DNA of 64,000 nt, taken from assembly GCA_024704765.1 (NCBI GenBank), contig JAKMXF010000354.1:853690-917689 (forward strand), read 5' to 3'. The notes below the pieces were generated by a model. That model was not told where the DNA came from, did not search any database, and was given only the letters and a program-made list of their open reading frames with translations. The position numbers were made by a program, and so were the translations under genes. Of this stretch, positions 57,223-64,000 are shown one piece after another (position 1 is the first letter of the stretch; each line of letters opens with the position of its first letter). Source of the DNA: Oopsacas minuta. Taxonomy: Eukaryota; Animalia; Porifera.

Positions 57223-60200
57223 ATGACAGACAATATACACATAATTACAGTAAATGGTTGCAAGACTGGATTAGGGATCAGAATAGTGGGTCCATCTATT
57301 CCAGACAGTCCTTATGGTGTGTTTATTAAGAGTGTTACAGAGGGGTCACTGGCTGATACAGACGGACAGCTGAGAACTGGAGACAAGCTCGTGAGGGTGG
57401 GAGAAATAGAACTGACTGGGAAGACTCAGAGACAGGCAATCGACGTGTTGAAGCTTGAGGCACAGACTGATAGTATGACATTTACAATTGACAGATCTGA
57501 ACAAGTGAGAATAATTAATTAAACTATTCAATACAGTGTAACCTTCACAAACGGAGTGTCAGAGACGCCAAAAACCCCCGGTTGAGGAGGGTCATTTGTA
57601 TTAAGCATATTATTATTTAATATAGGCAGCTGAGGAGTTCGATATACTAATGACGCAGTCAGCTAATGAGATGACTTCTACATCTACCTCTAGCATTGTC
57701 GGGGGTGCTGTTAGTCTGACAGGTGGAGAGGATACAGAAGAGAGATGGGACCCAGAGACGCTGACAGAGGAGTCTCTATCTGTGAGTGAGCAAGCTCCCT
57801 CTAGTGCTATTCAAACTATTACTATTGAGAAGACTACACATTTGGGGATTGTTGTTCAAGGTAAGTTACTGACTTCTTAATTAATGATTAGAATCCATGG
57901 TTCAAGATACAGTATTATATTTTTGTAATAACCTTGAAGGTTCATATCCTACCATTCTTATTATTCGTATTTAGCCTGTTTTATAGTAACTTTATCATCA
58001 AACTGAAGAATTATCAAATGGATACTCAACATTACGAGTACTTACAATCTTCCACTACCCTGGGGGTGCTCGAGAAAACTGAACCCCTCCTCATTACCGG
58101 ACAAGCTGGCCAGATAGGTAGCATCCTCCTGGATGTGAGAGCTCTCTCTAAATGGATTGATACTCACAATCCCTCTGAGTTAATACAAGCAATCAGCCTT
58201 CTACTCGCTAGACTAAGGAATATACACACAGAAATACACACTTCATCTCAACACGAGGAAGAGACAGTATCTATTCTCTTATCTGATACTATTACTCAAT
58301 TAGTTACAAACTACAGATTAGAGTATACAGCTTCATCTGTTATCTGTAGCTTGATGGAACAGCTGATTAATAAGAAATTATTTATACCAGCTGGACTAAT
58401 TAAATTACTGGAGCAGATAGTAACTACTACTAATAGTTACAATGCTATAGGAATATTCAGATTGCTAGAACATGTTTTGATAATCTGGGACAGTAATAAT
58501 GGTGATGTAAGCTTGTTGACTTCTCTCTTGTCTCGTGTATGGATAGCTGGTTTTGAGGAATTGCATTCTCCTAACCCTAAGAAGAGACAGTCAGCTCTCA
58601 GCTTGCTCTGGCGGGTCTCCCTCACCTCAAACAGCCCCCAGACAGAGATACAATCTATTCTGACAGAATTCTCACAGGATTCAGATAGTAGAGTCAGAAC
58701 TACAGCACTATTGGGATTCCTAGGCTTACTGGATAGCTCTACTGCATTTGATCAGTCTAGATTGCTAGCAATATATAAATGTACTTTACCTCTATTAGCA
58801 GATGAGTTCGAGGAGGTGAGAATCCCCGCGGGGAAACTTATCCATAACATAGCTCTCATATGTCCGGACGCTGTCTGGGGGACACGTACCAGGGAACAGA
58901 AGGTTCTGACGCTCCTAGATGATGCATTCATGTGGTTATGTAATGCTATTAATGACCTACGTGAATCTGTCAAGTTGTCAGCTCTACAATGTCTGTCCTC
59001 CTTCTCAGCTGTTAGTGAAGATATTCTGCTACACAGTCTGGATAAGACATTCTCTAATACTATGCAGATGGTAGCTGACACACTCAACATGAGAGGATTC
59101 GTGTCAGCATTCGTACAAGCTTTAGATGATGAGTGTGCAGAAGTACGCTTATGCGCTCTACAGACTGTGAGTCAAATAGCTAGAGAGAATTCTACTTTTG
59201 CAACTTCTGCTCTAGACTTGATTGTTGATATGTTCAGTGATGAAATACAGTCAGTACGTCTTGAAGCTATTCGTTGTCTGGGCTCATTCTCCACTAACGT
59301 ATCTCTCAGAGACGAGCAGCTTGACGTAGTCCTGTACAATCTAGAAGAGAATTCCCAATTTATCCGTGAGGCTATTCATAGACTACTCGGGTCATGTTCC
59401 CTACCTACTGGCTCTGCTATTCTCTGTGTAGTTAACTCTCTGCTAGCTAATCTCACTAAATACCCTCTAGATGTATACTCCATATGGAGATGTGTTAAGG
59501 GTATAGGGTCTAATAACGGACATGCTGTATGCTCCCAGGTATCCGGTCTCTTGAGAGCTCATCCATTCTTCATATCGACAGAACCTAATCCAGAAGATCC
59601 GGCCTATGTGAGTATTCTTATTCTTGTATTTAACGCTATCTCATCCTGTCCCACAGTACTTCCCATCCTCCCTACTCATATATACGTACGGTACCCCTAC
59701 CTCAGAGACGCTCTCCCTCAACTAGCTCCACAGATACGATTAGCTGTGTATAATACGTCTTCAGCTAGCAGAGAGCAGGTAGACTTGTCTCTGTCATTTG
59801 TTAAACAATTCAGTTATGTTCTAGAGAATATAGAACATGCTAATCCTGTCCTGTTAAAGACACATGCTAATGACTTCTTCTCTCTGACACAGACAGTATC
59901 CCCCGTCGCTGCCTTTGCTTCTTTCTATCTCTACTCACTCAGTCTCATTACTGACAGCATACAAATATTATCCGCAGATGTTTCTAATACAAATATTATG
60001 CTCACAAAAGCTCTGCTAGCTCTGAAGTACATATACAGACTGATATATCTTTTCACTGGCCTCAGCGAGAAAGAGAAAGATATCTTCACTGAGTGGAGAG
60101 AAGCAGCTTGGAGTCTAGTCAATAGAACTCAACAGCTGGGCTCAGAAAAGAGAGTTTGCTTAGAAATGATTTCATCTGAAGTTCCCAGAATAGAATCACC

Positions 60201-63200
60201 TCCTTCTAACTTGATACGTATATCCACCGTTAAAATATTTGAACCTAAACCTAACGAGTCAGAAACTCCTCTCAAATATGCATCAGGGCTAGCATTCTCC
60301 CTAGTAGTGAATGCTGTAATAACCAACTGTACAGATATTAGCTGTATAGCTGTCACTGTTAGGATGCCAGATGACAAGCTAGTCATCCACCAGCCAAAAC
60401 CAGATGAATTCAGTCACCTGGGAGATCAGGATTACCGCTTGCTTACTAGTATCGTGTTAGACGGTAAGAAATGGTCTAGTCAGGGACAGATAGAGCTTAA
60501 TGTAGTACATAAATACGAAGAGAACGAGGGAGGAAGTGAATACAATCTAGTTGAAATGGAATCTGAGATTGTAAATGTATCTCCAATGGATAATTTTGTG
60601 AAGAGAGATTCTCTAAAACATTGCTGTATTTGTCTCTCACAGTCTGTGTGTTTGTTCATCAAATCTAAATAAGATATTAAACTTTGTATTATTAAATCAT
60701 AATTTCTTATTTGTTCAATTATACTTTAACCTCCCCAGGTGCTACTTGTTATTTCATGTTTAGACTTTTAATTTTGTAATTGGATTATTTATAATTTATT
60801 GTGTGTTGTAGGAGGAGAGGGTGACCCAGAGGGACCCAGGGTATCAATCAGAGACATCACAGAGGGAGGAGATGCTCAAATAGACGGGAGACTGAAGATA
60901 GGAGATACAATTCTATCCATCAACAATGTTTCATTTCAATCTATAGAACTAATTAAGGTTATGCAGTTGCTTACAAGAATGAAGATTAGTCGAAGAACAA
61001 AAGAGTACACAATTGTCTTTCAGAGAATAGGGTAAGACAATTTGCTTATTACTTTAATTGACAATAGAGAAGGGGACAGGTACCGAAAGGAAATATATAT
61101 TTACTCACTACTATGCTAGGTTTATTTCCTTGAATTTGGTATACTACAGTCTAAACATAGTTTATCAGTTGTTTACTTTTTTACTTGTAATTCGAGAATA
61201 TTGGTTATCATATCTGCCCTCGATATTATAAGTAGATTATTGTCTACAAATTAGAAAATGAAGGTATTTTTAAACTGGTCATCCATCAAACCAGTGGAAA
61301 ACTCTGCAATATCAATTTTTCCATCCTCACTTTTATCGAACATCTGGAACACAGCCTCTACCTCTTCTTCACTGGCTGTTTCTCCCATCAATTCAATAAA
61401 ATTCGTAAAATCATCTTTGCTAATCAACCCATCTTTATCTCTGTCAATAATCTCAAACATATCACTAACAGTTTGTGTATTTGTTTGTTGTTTCGCACCT
61501 TCTGTTACCATTTTAATAAAATCTTGGATGTCTATTTTATTGTCGAAGTTTACGTCGAACTTTTTCACAAGTTTATCAATCTCACTCAGGGGTACTTGTT
61601 CATGTGTCTGTGAGATTAGCAGTTCTATCTCCTTACTTCCTATTAACCCATCTTTATCCTTGTCAAGTTTGGAGAATATAGGATTGAGTGTCGACAGTAC
61701 CTTATTATGATTCTGTAGATGTTGCCATCCTATTAATAATCATATATTCATAAATATTTACAGAAGTAATCCTCCCTCGCATGTGAGCCGAGAGGGTGAG
61801 AAAGTTCAAGAATGCATTTCAGAAGTAGCCAAGAAACCATCAGACACGGAAGTGCAGTCAGAAGGTAAATATGTACTTTAATTCAACTTACCTGATTTCT
61901 TTGAATTTATCTTATCCATTAATAACTTGCCCTAGGATATTTTATTTTATTTATTTGTTTATTATTTATACTAATTTCTTGTTATTATTCATCCAATTTG
62001 TGAAGTTTTACACTCTATTAATAGAATTGTTTAGTTCTTACAGCTGTAAATTACCCATTATTGTAATTGTATATATTTCCTGGGTTATGTCTGAGAGTCT
62101 GGTCATATTCACAGCTGTTTATTTGATAGGTACAGATACAAAACGGAGCTCCGAACTCCGCAGTAGTGACTCTAAACAGAAACACGGCAGAGGAAGGAGG
62201 AAAGGAATGCAGCGTAAGATGTCCCTCGATCCTCACTGTAAAGTAAAGCTCTCTAAACTAGAGAAAGCACTTTGTTACTTAGGTCAGTTATGCCATGTCA
62301 GCATAATAGCATGTATGCAGTCATATATCTAATTATTTCCTAAAACTCAATAATCCAGTAAACACAAATATTTACTGTTAATGTCTGTCTATTGGGTGTA
62401 TAAGGATATTATCTTTTTCTATTGCAATGGAGTTTGCTTGCAAATCTCCACAATCGGATCGATCACCTACTTTTATTGTTATGTCTTAATTACTTTGACC
62501 AGCAATCAAATTATTGTTTATTAGCTTGTGAACTAATTGTACCCTCTTCTCTGCGCTAACCTAATTAGCGTGCTAACATTAATTTTTTATTGTTCTATTC
62601 AGGTTATACACCGAGTGAAGAACAAAGAGCTCAGTTACATGAGAATTTAAATATTGATGAAGATGGATACGTGACTTATCTAGATTTTGTGAACGAGGCT
62701 AAGAGGCTCTTCGCTATTCAAATTGATGAGAGACAGCTCAGTTCAGGTATTTTATCAAATTAGAAAATTATAGTAAACTCTAATAAGGAATAGATTAGCT
62801 AAATAAATATATTAATATTACTCTCATAGAAAAGTATTTTTGCCCGTATATTTAATCATCTTGATCAATGGCCTGTTTCTTCTCAATCATCTCTTCTAAC
62901 TTTCTCTGTAAAACTCGAGCAAATGTTGCTGTATATAGCGGACTTACCGAGTCGAGGAGCGAATATATAGTTTCATAAAATCTGTTTGTATTTTCTCCTT
63001 TCTCCATGAAATCGAATTCATTTGACACAATTCTGAAACCCTTGACAGATAGCTCCACGCAATATTTGACCTTTTCCTGAGTTTCTATGTTAAAATATAC
63101 CAGGTCACTGGTAGAGGCGAGCTTTGTAGAAACTTCAACTGACTTGACAGCAAACTCAATTTCTCTCTTTATTTCTGGAGCTTGTAAATTAAGGTTTATG

Positions 63201-63621
63201 TCTGTATCTGTTTCGCTCCCATACTCCCAATTGGTAGCTCTTGCCATATCTCTTTAAAATATAAATTGCTACTAAGTAGTAATACTGGGATATTTATTTT
63301 AAATAATTATGTCTGACATTACAATCAATTTCTGTTTATATCGAAGCTCAAGGGACAGTGAAAATTACTTCGCTATAACCCATGAAAATTATCTTACTTT
63401 GGCGGTTTGGGTCCATATTTGTACAATTACAGACTTCAATATAACTGAAGTTGAGTGTACATGATACAATGTATAATATTTAAATTTTCTTAGGATTATT
63501 CTTACTGGGCTCTACGCCAAGAGATGAGACAGACCAAATACAGAAAGAATTAGAGTTAGACCCAGATGCGTTTCGCAGTACAGCTGATGAAGATAGAAGT
63601 GTATTAGAACTGCTAGACGAG
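57223..63621 (+). CDS. STXBP4: STXBP4/Synip-like PDZ-PDZ-EF-hand protein; continues beyond the window; host of nested genes
   Basis: Phase-consistent exons 57223-57504, 57626-57860, 60812-61031, 61764-61864, 62130-62282, 62603-62746, 63494-63621. PDZ1 (GLGIRIVG...DGQLRTGD), PDZ2 split across 57860/60812, and KMSLDPHCKVKLSKLEKALCYLG|YTPSEEQRAQL...GYVTYLDFVNEAKRLF, which resembles the STXBP4 EF-hand-like region. Confidence 0.8.
57534..57598. mobile_element. MITE family B, internally deleted copy in STXBP4 intron 1
   Basis: CAGTGTAACCTTCACAAACGGAGTGTCAGAGACGCCAAAAA matches 25381-25420. TA on both flanks and a degenerate right TIR. Confidence 0.7.
58018..60672 (+). CDS. INTS4: Integrator complex subunit 4, intronless, nested on the same strand in STXBP4 intron 2
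   Basis: HEAT repeats with INTS4-type motifs DSDSRVRTTAL, DDAF..LC, LHSLDK, AFVQALDDE..EVR, VDMFSDEIQSVRL, NLTKYP.D..SIW and EP..EDPAY..ILILVFNA. First ATG at 58018 (884 aa). Confidence 0.9.
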   Translation: MDTQHYEYLQSSTTLGVLEKTEPLLITGQAGQIGSILLDVRALSKWIDTHNPSELIQAISLLLARLRNIHTEIHTSSQHEEETVSILLSDTITQLVTNYRLEYTASSVICSLMEQLINKKLFIPAGLIKLLEQIVTTTNSYNAIGIFRLLEHVLIIWDSNNGDVSLLTSLLSRVWIAGFEELHSPNPKKRQSALSLLWRVSLTSNSPQTEIQSILTEFSQDSDSRVRTTALLGFLGLLDSSTAFDQSRLLAIYKCTLPLLADEFEEVRIPAGKLIHNIALICPDAVWGTRTREQKVLTLLDDAFMWLCNAINDLRESVKLSALQCLSSFSAVSEDILLHSLDKTFSNTMQMVADTLNMRGFVSAFVQALDDECAEVRLCALQTVSQIARENSTFATSALDLIVDMFSDEIQSVRLEAIRCLGSFSTNVSLRDEQLDVVLYNLEENSQFIREAIHRLLGSCSLPTGSAILCVVNSLLANLTKYPLDVYSIWRCVKGIGSNNGHAVCSQVSGLLRAHPFFISTEPNPEDPAYVSILILVFNAISSCPTVLPILPTHIYVRYPYLRDALPQLAPQIRLAVYNTSSASREQVDLSLSFVKQFSYVLENIEHANPVLLKTHANDFFSLTQTVSPVAAFASFYLYSLSLITDSIQILSADVSNTNIMLTKALLALKYIYRLIYLFTGLSEKEKDIFTEWREAAWSLVNRTQQLGSEKRVCLEMISSEVPRIESPPSNLIRISTVKIFEPKPNESETPLKYASGLAFSLVVNAVITNCTDISCIAVTVRMPDDKLVIHQPKPDEFSHLGDQDYRLLTSIVLDGKKWSSQGQIELNVVHKYEENEGGSEYNLVEMESEIVNVSPMDNFVKRDSLKHCCICLSQSVCLFIKSK
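61251..61919 (-). CDS. Calmodulin-like four-EF-hand protein, interleaved with STXBP4
   Basis: Exon 1 61919-61892 (MDKINSKKS, phase-1 donor GTAAGT) and exon 2 61729-61251. EF loops DKDKDGLIGSKE, DVNFDNKIDIQD, DRDKDGLISKDD and DKSEDGKIDIAE. Confidence 0.8.
62852..63247 (-). CDS. GSKIP: GSK3B-interacting protein (DUF727), nested antisense in an STXBP4 intron
   Basis: EFAVKSVEVS.KL...VYFNIETQE..KYCVELSVKGFRIV...YETIYSLLDSVSP.Y...F...LQRKLE matches the GSKIP pattern. Confidence 0.88.
   Translation of the reverse strand: MARATNWEYGSETDTDINLNLQAPEIKREIEFAVKSVEVSTKLASTSDLVYFNIETQEKVKYCVELSVKGFRIVSNEFDFMEKGENTNRFYETIYSLLDSVSPLYTATFARVLQRKLEEMIEKKQAIDQDD
63322..63457 (-). mobile_element. MITE family A copy, reverse orientation
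   Basis: TA-flanked, TIRs CAATCAATTTCTGTTTATATCGAAG / CTTCAATATAACTGAAGTTGAGTG. The reverse complement aligns with 56950-57079. Confidence 0.8.
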
Positions 63622-63711
63622 GTATAATATGTATAACACTTAAGAATAGACTATTTGTAATAATTCAGCCACAATTAAGCAAACAAATCATATAGTTATA
63701 GCTGGTAGAAG

Positions 63712-63951
63712 TTACTTGACCTCCTTTTCCTTCTCCTCGATTTGTTCCATCAGTCCTTGGACGTTCTGCTCCAGCTGTTCCACACGATCACTCATCTCGT
63801 CCAGTTTAGAAGTTATCTGAGTTGATATCTCCTCAAACTTGCCTTGCATGTCTTGGAGTAAGCGTCCTATTACCAAGGATAGATCTTGTGCCCGTGCGGA
63901 TTCTGCACCCTGTTGTCCAGGATTGTTCTCCTCTTGCTTAGAAGGGTTCAT
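63712..63951 (-). CDS. HSBP1: Heat shock factor-binding protein 1, antisense, downstream of an STXBP4 donor site
   Basis: 79-aa coiled coil AQDLSLVIGRLLQDMQGKFEEISTQITSKLDEMSDRVEQLEQNVQGLM, matching HSBP1. Confidence 0.88.
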   Translation of the reverse strand: MNPSKQEENNPGQQGAESARAQDLSLVIGRLLQDMQGKFEEISTQITSKLDEMSDRVEQLEQNVQGLMEQIEEKEKEVK

Positions 63952-64000
63952 ATCTCTGTGATTTGGATATAATATTAATTGCTAAATTTGAATGAAAATG

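Follow-up and report, generated by a model that had tools for sequence, protein, structure and literature searches.

When one gene lies inside an intron of another on the same strand, how does a polymerase read through a complete, expressed gene, poly(A) signals included? The question is raised by a locus of the glass sponge Oopsacas minuta, within a 64-kb stretch of DNA (the window), where a preliminary description had placed a gene for the Integrator subunit INTS4 inside an intron of an STXBP4 gene. Its coordinates all proved correct, including two acceptor-like sites (tatttag ending at 57974 and tttatag ending at 57986) and an INTS4 ATG located 157 nt past the donor of the intron.

The INTS4 gene and its host

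The nested coding sequence (58018-60672, + strand) is a single exon of 2655 nt that encodes 884 aa and ends with the stop codon TAA (60670-60672). The proposed identity of its product was upheld by several searches. The C-terminal INTS4-specific Ig-like domain INTS4_C (Pfam PF25458) matched residues 740-881 with an E-value of 4.1e-24, above the curated cut-off, and HEAT and HEAT_2 matches were also obtained with Pfam. With phmmer, human INTS4 (7cun_D) aligned in three stretches (E 4.4e-83) and the Drosophila-length chain 7sn8_D was also matched (E 1.4e-64); the HEAT-repeat body can be aligned, by Pfam and phmmer, to structurally solved INTS4. INTS4 is an intact, intronless and functional gene within a phase-1 intron of its host.

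The exons of the host, all on the + strand, were delimited with the help of run X4, a single run available as assembled contigs, so that transcript starts, 3' ends and abundance are outside their reach; it was taken as RNA-like because its contigs show GT..AG joints. Exon 1 (57215-57504), preceded by an acceptor (cgtag) ending at 57214, contains the ATG (57223) and a complete PDZ domain, PDZ 1 (Pfam PDZ, 1.5e-08). Intron 1 (57505-57625; 121 nt, GT..AG) is removed by an RNA joint 57504->57626. Exon 2 (57626-57860), based on that joint on its 5' side and on a loose-end match on its 3' side, encodes an acidic/Ser-rich linker and the first strands of PDZ 2 (...TITIEKTTHLGIVVQ G) and ends in phase 1; the TITIEKTTHLGIVVQ motif is kept in five relatives. 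As read from the sequence, the exon finishes at 57860 with ...GTT CAA G and gtaagt comes next, while ttgtag closes the intron at 60811 and GA GGA GAG opens exon 3 at 60812. Intron 2 (57861-60811, + strand, phase 1) therefore measures 2951 nt and encloses the entire INTS4 gene, and the join across it translates as ...HLGIVVQ-G-GEGDPEGPRVSIRDI.

The junction had been proposed from the DNA, and it was found in RNA. In an X4 contig whose alignment begins at 60810, 13 letters are loose, GGATTGTTGTTCA; with the AG common to both sides added, they are identical to 57846-57860. This 15-mer is unique in the window (0 occurrences expected by chance), and the junction 57860/60812 therefore exists in RNA. 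Splicing of host pre-mRNA spans INTS4 in its entirety. An INTS4 RNA contig (57973-60642) falls inside the interval that is spliced out, and both genes are on the + strand, so the nesting is a same-strand one, as first described.

Exon 3 (60812-61031) matches Pfam PDZ (4.5e-09) at profile positions 22-72 only, so the first third of PDZ 2 must come from exon 2; that the intron splits a PDZ domain is thus borne out. Downstream of exon 3, an RNA joint (61030/1->61763/4) leads to exon 4 (61764-61864), which has X4 joints at both sides, and a further joint (61862/4->62128/30) leads to exon 5 (62130-62282). A loose RNA end at 62284 corresponds to the start of exon 6 (62603-62746), where 30 loose letters match from 62605 onward. 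Exon 6 is EF-hand-like (…NIDEDGYVTYLDF…), with Pfam EF-hand_7 reaching only E 0.038, and it is kept in one relative, L008.

The attribution of the host to STXBP4 holds in a modified form. Host exons were searched singly, not as a joined spliced protein. Exon 3, which holds two thirds of PDZ 2, aligned end to end (5-71 versus 38-103) with the PDZ of syntaxin-binding protein 4 (1wi4_A; E 3.1e-08), while the matches of PDZ 1 are not specific to STXBP4. The C-terminal WW domain of STXBP4 would lie beyond the window and was looked for in another relative, L009, which has an intron-split WW domain, a putative part of the same gene, ∼17 kb downstream of the PDZ exons on the same contig and strand; its halves gave weak matches to the STXBP4 WW domain (2ysg_A), at E 0.17 (the only match of that half) and E 0.0013. 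Human STXBP4 has a single N-terminal PDZ. The single-PDZ arrangement of STXBP4 / Synip is not found here, as host exon 1 contributes an additional complete PDZ, and the host is accordingly an STXBP4-like gene carrying one more domain. The PDZ matching 1WI4, the EF-hand-like exon and, weakly, the split WW of the relative matching 2YSG all point to an STXBP4-like protein, in which the PDZ interrupted by the intron is the one resembling that of STXBP4.

INTS4 is not the only gene inside this host. An antisense ORF for an EF-hand (calmodulin-like) protein (61251-61568, − strand) is nested in the host intron 61032-61763; it is spanned by an X4 contig (61002-61672), and every relative has an EF-hand gene call at the corresponding position. 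Unrelated genes nested in the host comprise this EF-hand gene and, in relatives, GSKIP, HSBP1, a GPCR and a DEAD helicase, so nothing singles out INTS4.

Conservation of the nesting

The locus was compared across six taxa, namely the window and five other assemblies (L001, L004-L007). The position, donor, phase and acceptor of the intron, and the nesting itself, are kept in all five, where the orthologous introns span 2928-3243 nt. The INTS4 orthologues are intact ORFs of 882-890 aa with 71-79% identity, and pairwise identity across the assemblies ranges from 69 to 87%. Collinear DNA contigs with the same layout were also found in a sixth and closer organism (X5). These sequence comparisons suggest that the nesting is older than the divergence of the six taxa.

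Ahead of the INTS4 coding sequence, alignment A1 revealed two blocks that are conserved. Block 1 (TATCCTACCATT; 57945-57956, + strand) is located 18 nt 5' of the acceptor used by INTS4. The window, L004, L005 and L006 have its exact core, L007 has a degenerate form and in L001 it is unrecognisable; the block may serve INTS4 as a promoter or as a trans-splice signal. Block 2 (TAACTTTA; 57987-57994, + strand) falls within the INTS4 5' UTR in O. minuta and is present upstream of INTS4 in the window, L001, L004, L006 and L007. The acceptor position for INTS4 is not conserved between species.

Both blocks were also considered as general promoter motifs. This was rejected, as neither shows enrichment at other places in the window or in the loci, and they are therefore locus-specific. 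A sigma-70/terminator scan, irrelevant to a eukaryote, gave chance matches only.

Ends of the INTS4 and host RNAs

A separate RNA contig of 2692 nt (X4 record 19) aligns to 57973-60642 from letter 23 of the contig onward; the 22 letters before it, at the acceptor tatttag (57968-57974, + strand), do not align. The first of the two acceptor-like sites is thus the point at which the alignment begins. A processed mRNA of its own is made from INTS4, with a 5' end spliced at acceptor 57974, 43 nt 5' of the first ATG; a sequence scan found no upstream ATG between 57975 and 58018. The 22 leading letters may represent a leader, part of a host exon or an artefact of assembly. The joints listed for X4 include some with sides of 21-28 letters, but none from 57860 to 57975. 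Reading the sequence with 57860 joined to 57975 or 57987 gives a TGA after about ten codons, so a host/INTS4 protein fusion is impossible.

At the other side of the gene, no X4 RNA contigs cover 60643-60811, and the 3' end of INTS4 is thus unseen in contigs. A script scan located two ATTAAA hexamers (60676-60696, + strand), 4 and 19 nt past the INTS4 stop and ∼115 nt ahead of the host acceptor, as candidate poly(A) signals of INTS4. Canonical hexamers follow INTS4 in three of the six taxa and are absent in the other three, and they therefore provide no argument for a conserved 3'-end signal. An Rfam search of 55000-64000 returned no matches.

An X4 contig of the host has 11 foreign letters, AAAAAACTTAC, ahead of 57213, at acceptor 57214 (the AG being common to both), 8 nt ahead of the host ATG. 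This leader has 0 occurrences in the 64-kb window, including the 57 kb upstream of the host. Spliced-leader trans-splicing, as reported for glass sponges, would be in keeping with a foreign leader at this acceptor; the Aphrocallistes vastus paper gives a trans-spliced leader of ∼37 bp (PMC10282587). Neither nesting nor trans-splicing is mentioned in the O. minuta genome paper. Release of INTS4 by trans-splicing, suggested in the preliminary description, is plausible and partly supported: the 22 unaligned letters at 57974, the lack of a listed joint to host exon 2 and the leader on the host all agree with it, the 22 letters being a putative leader.

Origin of the INTS4 transcript and comparable loci

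The reading that we regard as probable is that INTS4 is a well-conserved but ordinary parallel nested gene, with a small promoter of its own and a leader added in trans. Its primary transcript would most likely start between the host donor and the ATG, within a stretch of 114-157 nt, and the two locus-specific blocks, kept in most relatives, fall in this putative promoter segment. The 22 non-collinear letters of the INTS4 contig would represent the glass-sponge spliced leader, host mRNA likewise receiving a foreign leader close to its ATG, and host polymerases would have to read through the weak ATTAAA signals past INTS4. The space for such a promoter is very small and acceptor positions vary between species, two observations that sit uneasily with an own-promoter view.

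A promoterless INTS4 could instead be cut from host pre-mRNA, by leader trans-splicing at 57974 and polyadenylation near 60700, each host transcript then yielding either the STXBP4-like mRNA or the INTS4 mRNA as mutually exclusive outcomes. We hold this to be possible but rather doubtful. The shared strand, the mere 114 nt from the host donor to the used acceptor, the existence of leader trans-splicing in glass sponges (seen here at the host 5' end) and the lack of the intron parts flanking INTS4 from RNA contigs all speak for it. However, both processed RNAs are present in run X4, and because it contains host exon contigs spliced across INTS4, cutting cannot be the dominant fate. Two locus-specific blocks also exceed what a plain pyrimidine tract and AG would need, the acceptor position is not conserved and canonical poly(A) hexamers are missing in half of the taxa. 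That a promoterless cistron has been kept since the glass-sponge common ancestor, with the two conserved blocks as its processing signal, seems to us somewhat unlikely. INTS4 mRNA might also arise from the host promoter, as in a shared-exon locus of the cholinergic type, with exons 1-2 cis-spliced 57860->57975 onto INTS4 as an alternative last exon. Donor 57860 and acceptor 57974 lie on one strand and each is a good site, and a host exon would, like any leader, end in AG, in keeping with an alignment that starts at 57973. Yet this joint is unlisted, even though its 24-letter side is long enough, and in such a transcript the INTS4 ATG would be preceded by ∼180 codons of host ORF, closed by a TGA, so that poor translation of INTS4 would be expected. 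This origin is quite improbable.

We consider it very improbable indeed that Integrator, with INTS4 as a part, adjusts the level of its own subunit through this nesting by cutting the nascent transcript of host and INTS4. The feedback loop raised in the preliminary description gained no support: the identity of the nested gene speaks for it and nothing beyond, whereas the same host holds several unrelated nested genes in other introns, and neither an Integrator-type 3' box nor an snRNA-like element was found (Rfam being blank over 55000-64000). The nesting is without a demonstrated link to Integrator biochemistry, and we know of no functional link between INTS4 and STXBP4-like proteins. In a related glass sponge, 12.4% of genes are nested (PMC10282587), and a nested INTS4 therefore needs no special explanation.

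Same-strand nesting and leader addition both have precedents. At the cholinergic locus, VAChT/unc-17 lies inside the first intron of ChAT/cha-1 on the same strand, an arrangement conserved over long evolutionary distances; there, the two genes have a 5' exon in common and a functional link. INTS4 resembles it as a same-strand gene long conserved in a host intron and differs in that a shared coding exon is unlikely here, because the joint is unlisted and the upstream ORF would block translation. Nematodes and tunicates have spliced-leader operons in which the poly(A) site of the gene in front serves as the upstream signal. As in those operons, a same-strand gene would obtain its leader ∼100 nt past an upstream processing signal (see also PMC7986045); unlike them, that signal is here the splice donor of a gene that continues beyond, and co-transcription is hypothetical. 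Mammalian Mcts2 is also an intronless same-strand gene in an intron of its host, H13, and competition between host elongation and nested expression has been asked about there (PMC13309782). At that locus, however, a CpG-island promoter is present, imprinting decides and interference was shown by experiment, while the 5' end of INTS4 is made by splicing at an acceptor and interference is hypothetical.

The closest counterparts are in glass sponges and ctenophores. The A. vastus paper counts 2432 nested genes (12.4% of genes), many of them conserved (PMC10282587), and the paper on the ctenophore Hormiphora californensis explicitly notes 'parallel' (same-strand) nested genes (PMC8527503). Both share with our locus a single-exon gene in a host intron, a compact non-bilaterian genome and trans-spliced leaders, and in glass sponges nestings are conserved between species (PMC10282587), as at INTS4. 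The parts consulted offer counts and the glassin example, with the INTS4/STXBP4-like pair absent from them (PMC10282587, PMC8527503); for this one pair, our analysis adds junction-level RNA evidence and a six-taxon comparison. The pair is one more case of a phenomenon already known as common in glass sponges, since both the 12.4% of nested genes in A. vastus and the leaders were already published. Glass-sponge nesting has been counted in thousands, and nothing connects this pair to Integrator function. The compact locus, its conserved cis-blocks and its RNA-confirmed junctions make the question of read-through testable in an early-branching animal that uses trans-splicing. The A. vastus paper credits the published annotation of O. 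minuta with just 83 nested genes (PMC10282587), and this annotation may undercount nestings, as the INTS4 locus shows.

The nested gene and its host

The window is eukaryotic and compact, with ~37% G+C, few introns and individual ORFs reaching 4966 codons, and all features described here are consistent with a hexactinellid. On the + strand, 57861-60811 carries one unbroken ORF of 884 aa (first ATG 58018, stop 60670-60672). Pfam detected HEAT repeats and the INTS4-specific C-terminal domain (E 4.1e-24) in this ORF, and phmmer against solved structures matched it to human Integrator subunit 4 (E 4.4e-83); judged by these matches, the nested ORF is INTS4. Its ATG is flanked by A at −3 and G at +4, and a scan of 57975-58018 found no ATG ahead of it.

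The host gene, on the same strand, begins with a complete PDZ domain in exon 1 (57215-57504), which singles out no family. Exon 2 (57626-57860) closes with ...THLGIVVQ and a single G at 57860; the intron then begins with gtaagt and ends with ttgtag. Exon 3 (60812-61031) opens with GA GGA GAG and reads on as GGEGDPEGPRVSIRDI. This downstream exon covers PDZ profile positions 22 to 72 only (Pfam), so it must be the upstream exon that supplies the βA/βB strands and the carboxylate-binding loop (HLGI). The split PDZ aligns end to end with that of syntaxin-binding protein 4 (1wi4_A, E 3.1e-08). Exon 6 is EF-hand-like, at a Pfam E of 0.038 only, and is kept in a relative. The expected C-terminal WW domain falls outside the window; the contig of a relative that bears its PDZ exons also holds, on the host strand ~17 kb downstream, an intron-split WW domain that may belong to the same gene. 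Its halves match the STXBP4 WW structure 2ysg_A with E 0.17 (the sole match of that half) and E 0.0013. Going by these domain matches, 'STXBP4-like with an extra N-terminal PDZ' would be a fair name for the host.

Splicing of the host and INTS4 RNAs

Among the sequencing runs that match the window, X3 and X4 come from one common sample; X3 was taken as DNA (collinear contigs) and X4 as RNA (contigs with GT..AG joints). The RNA evidence consists of contigs from the single run X4, which are not informative on transcription starts, 3′ ends or levels; none covers 60643-60811. Joints in X4 confirmed the host introns 57505-57625 (intron 1), 61032-61763 and 61865-62129, and a 30-letter loose end at 62284 gave a further junction, 62282|62603. 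For the intron holding INTS4, one X4 contig aligns from 60810, and its 13 unaligned leading letters, together with the AG common to both sides, equal 57846-57860. Since this 15-mer occurs once in the window (0 expected by chance), the junction 57860|60812 is real. The preliminary description, which had INTS4 nested on the same strand in a PDZ-splitting intron and called for a check of this very junction, is thereby borne out in these observations; its distances are also exact (157 nt between donor and ATG; the two acceptor-like sites end at 57974 and 57986).

At 60868 the sole RNA contig (the X4 contig of the exon 2-3 junction) has A, and same-sample DNA contigs have G. The A would replace the conserved glycine in ...TEGGDA... 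of PDZ 2 by Arg; its source could be heterozygosity, an error in the contig or a difference between RNA and DNA.

A separate X4 contig of 2692 nt covers INTS4, aligning to 57973-60642 from contig position 23. The alignment begins at the AG of 'tatttag', so the acceptor ending at 57974 is indeed used for INTS4, with 22 letters in front of it. These letters could have come from host exon 2 by cis-splicing; no joint from exon 2 to 57975 was found among those of X4, though sides of 21-28 letters appear in others, and such an origin is therefore probably not the right one. An mRNA with host exons would also put a long ORF ahead of INTS4. At the 5′ end of the host, an X4 contig has AAAAAACTTAC ahead of the acceptor cgtag| at 57214, 8 nt ahead of the host ATG (57223), and a search of the 64-kb window for this leader plus AG, with one mismatch allowed, gave no match. 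For another glass sponge, Aphrocallistes vastus, a trans-spliced leader of ~37 bp is described (PMC10282587). Read most simply, INTS4 has an mRNA of its own that starts with a leader joined at 57974|57975. Trans-splicing of INTS4, one element of the earlier proposal, is likely on this evidence: the used acceptor, the unaligned letters and the foreign leader on the host are in line with it, and it is the identity of the INTS4 leader that we infer.

A PDZ-INTS4 fusion protein was considered and rejected as impossible, because cis-splicing of 57860 to 57975 or 57987 reaches a TGA after ~10 codons.

Conservation in related sponges

A word search recovered five INTS4 orthologues of 882-890 aa (71-79% identity); pairwise identity among all six is 69-87%, indicating six distinct taxa. 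The relatives' contigs share one order: sacsin-like gene, TDP-43, PDZ, linker, INTS4, PDZ half, antisense EF-hand, GSKIP, HSBP1 and class-C GPCR. In every INTS4 locus the donor comes after ...LGI-x-x-x and a single G (phase 1), and the acceptor stands directly before GGE/GGEG, and across relatives the intron measures 2928-3243 nt. A further, closer organism, sequenced in run X5 (DNA ~90-95% identical), has collinear contigs through exon 2, the donor and INTS4. From this shared layout, the nesting is judged to be old and maintained. The X5 organism has a GTG insertion at 57803, within host exon 2.

Upstream of the INTS4 ATG, two blocks stand out by alignment in an otherwise diverged intron: block 1, TATCCTACCATT (57945-57956), and block 2, TAACTTTA (57987-57994). 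The core of block 1 is kept in L004, L005 and L006, degenerate in L007 and unrecognisable in L001. Block 2 occurs in L001, L004, L006 and L007 and is missing from L005. Neither is common to all relatives, and across these loci the blocks are not general motifs. Acceptor positions and poly(A) hexamers around INTS4 also differ between relatives. The blocks are candidates for an INTS4-specific control element, which may be a minimal promoter, our first guess, or alternatively a trans-splice signal. The X5 organism carries a 17-nt insertion at 57940, immediately ahead of block 1, with the nesting kept.

Other nested genes and neighbouring elements

Processed RNAs of both host and INTS4 were found in the same RNA run (X4); the mutual exclusivity of the two mRNAs put forward in the preliminary description is a hypothesis. 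An Integrator feedback loop, also put forward in the preliminary description, is unsupported: no evidence for it was found, and an Rfam search of the region returned nothing. The host contains several other nested genes unrelated to INTS4, so the presence of INTS4 needs no functional explanation. Francis et al. put the nested genes of A. vastus at 2432 (12.4%), 'many of which are conserved', and attribute the low number of 83 in the O. minuta annotation to an artefact of annotation method (PMC10282587). The Hormiphora genome is described as having many nested genes parallel to their hosts, requiring separate processing (PMC8527503), and at mammalian H13/Mcts2 transcription of the same-strand nested gene can make the host terminate within its intron (PMC13309782). 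The INTS4/STXBP4-like pair is a case of this known class; specific to it are the evidence at junction level, a 5′ end set by an acceptor in an animal that trans-splices, and the conserved upstream blocks.

The next host intron holds the antisense EF-hand gene, whose RNA contig (61002-61672, −) extends, antisense to the host, over the final 30 nt of exon 3. In the relative, three more genes are encoded opposite the host (L008 1583-3391 and 30-1283; L009 762-2516). Two of them, for a DEAD-box helicase and for an unnamed protein of 417 aa, sit between the PDZ and the WW exons and would be further nested genes if a single transcript ran through both exon sets. The third, for a TPR protein, lies just past the WW exons. 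A tandem array in an intron of the relative's host gene (L009 14828-15272, −) translates as STVSLK / EYRVPK repeats and is probably a simple, non-coding DNA satellite.

Between the TDP-43 3′ UTR and the host gene, 56950-57075 is a MITE-like element of ~125 nt whose terminal inverted repeats are 21 nt long and 90% complementary. In all runs contig depth there rises to thousands, with many contigs stopping or branching inside, which marks the element as a high-copy repeat family. GT-rich direct repeats (GTCTTGTCATGTC units, 56702-56889) come straight after the TDP-43 stop codon, and an RNA contig spans them as TDP-43 3′ UTR, to ~56988.
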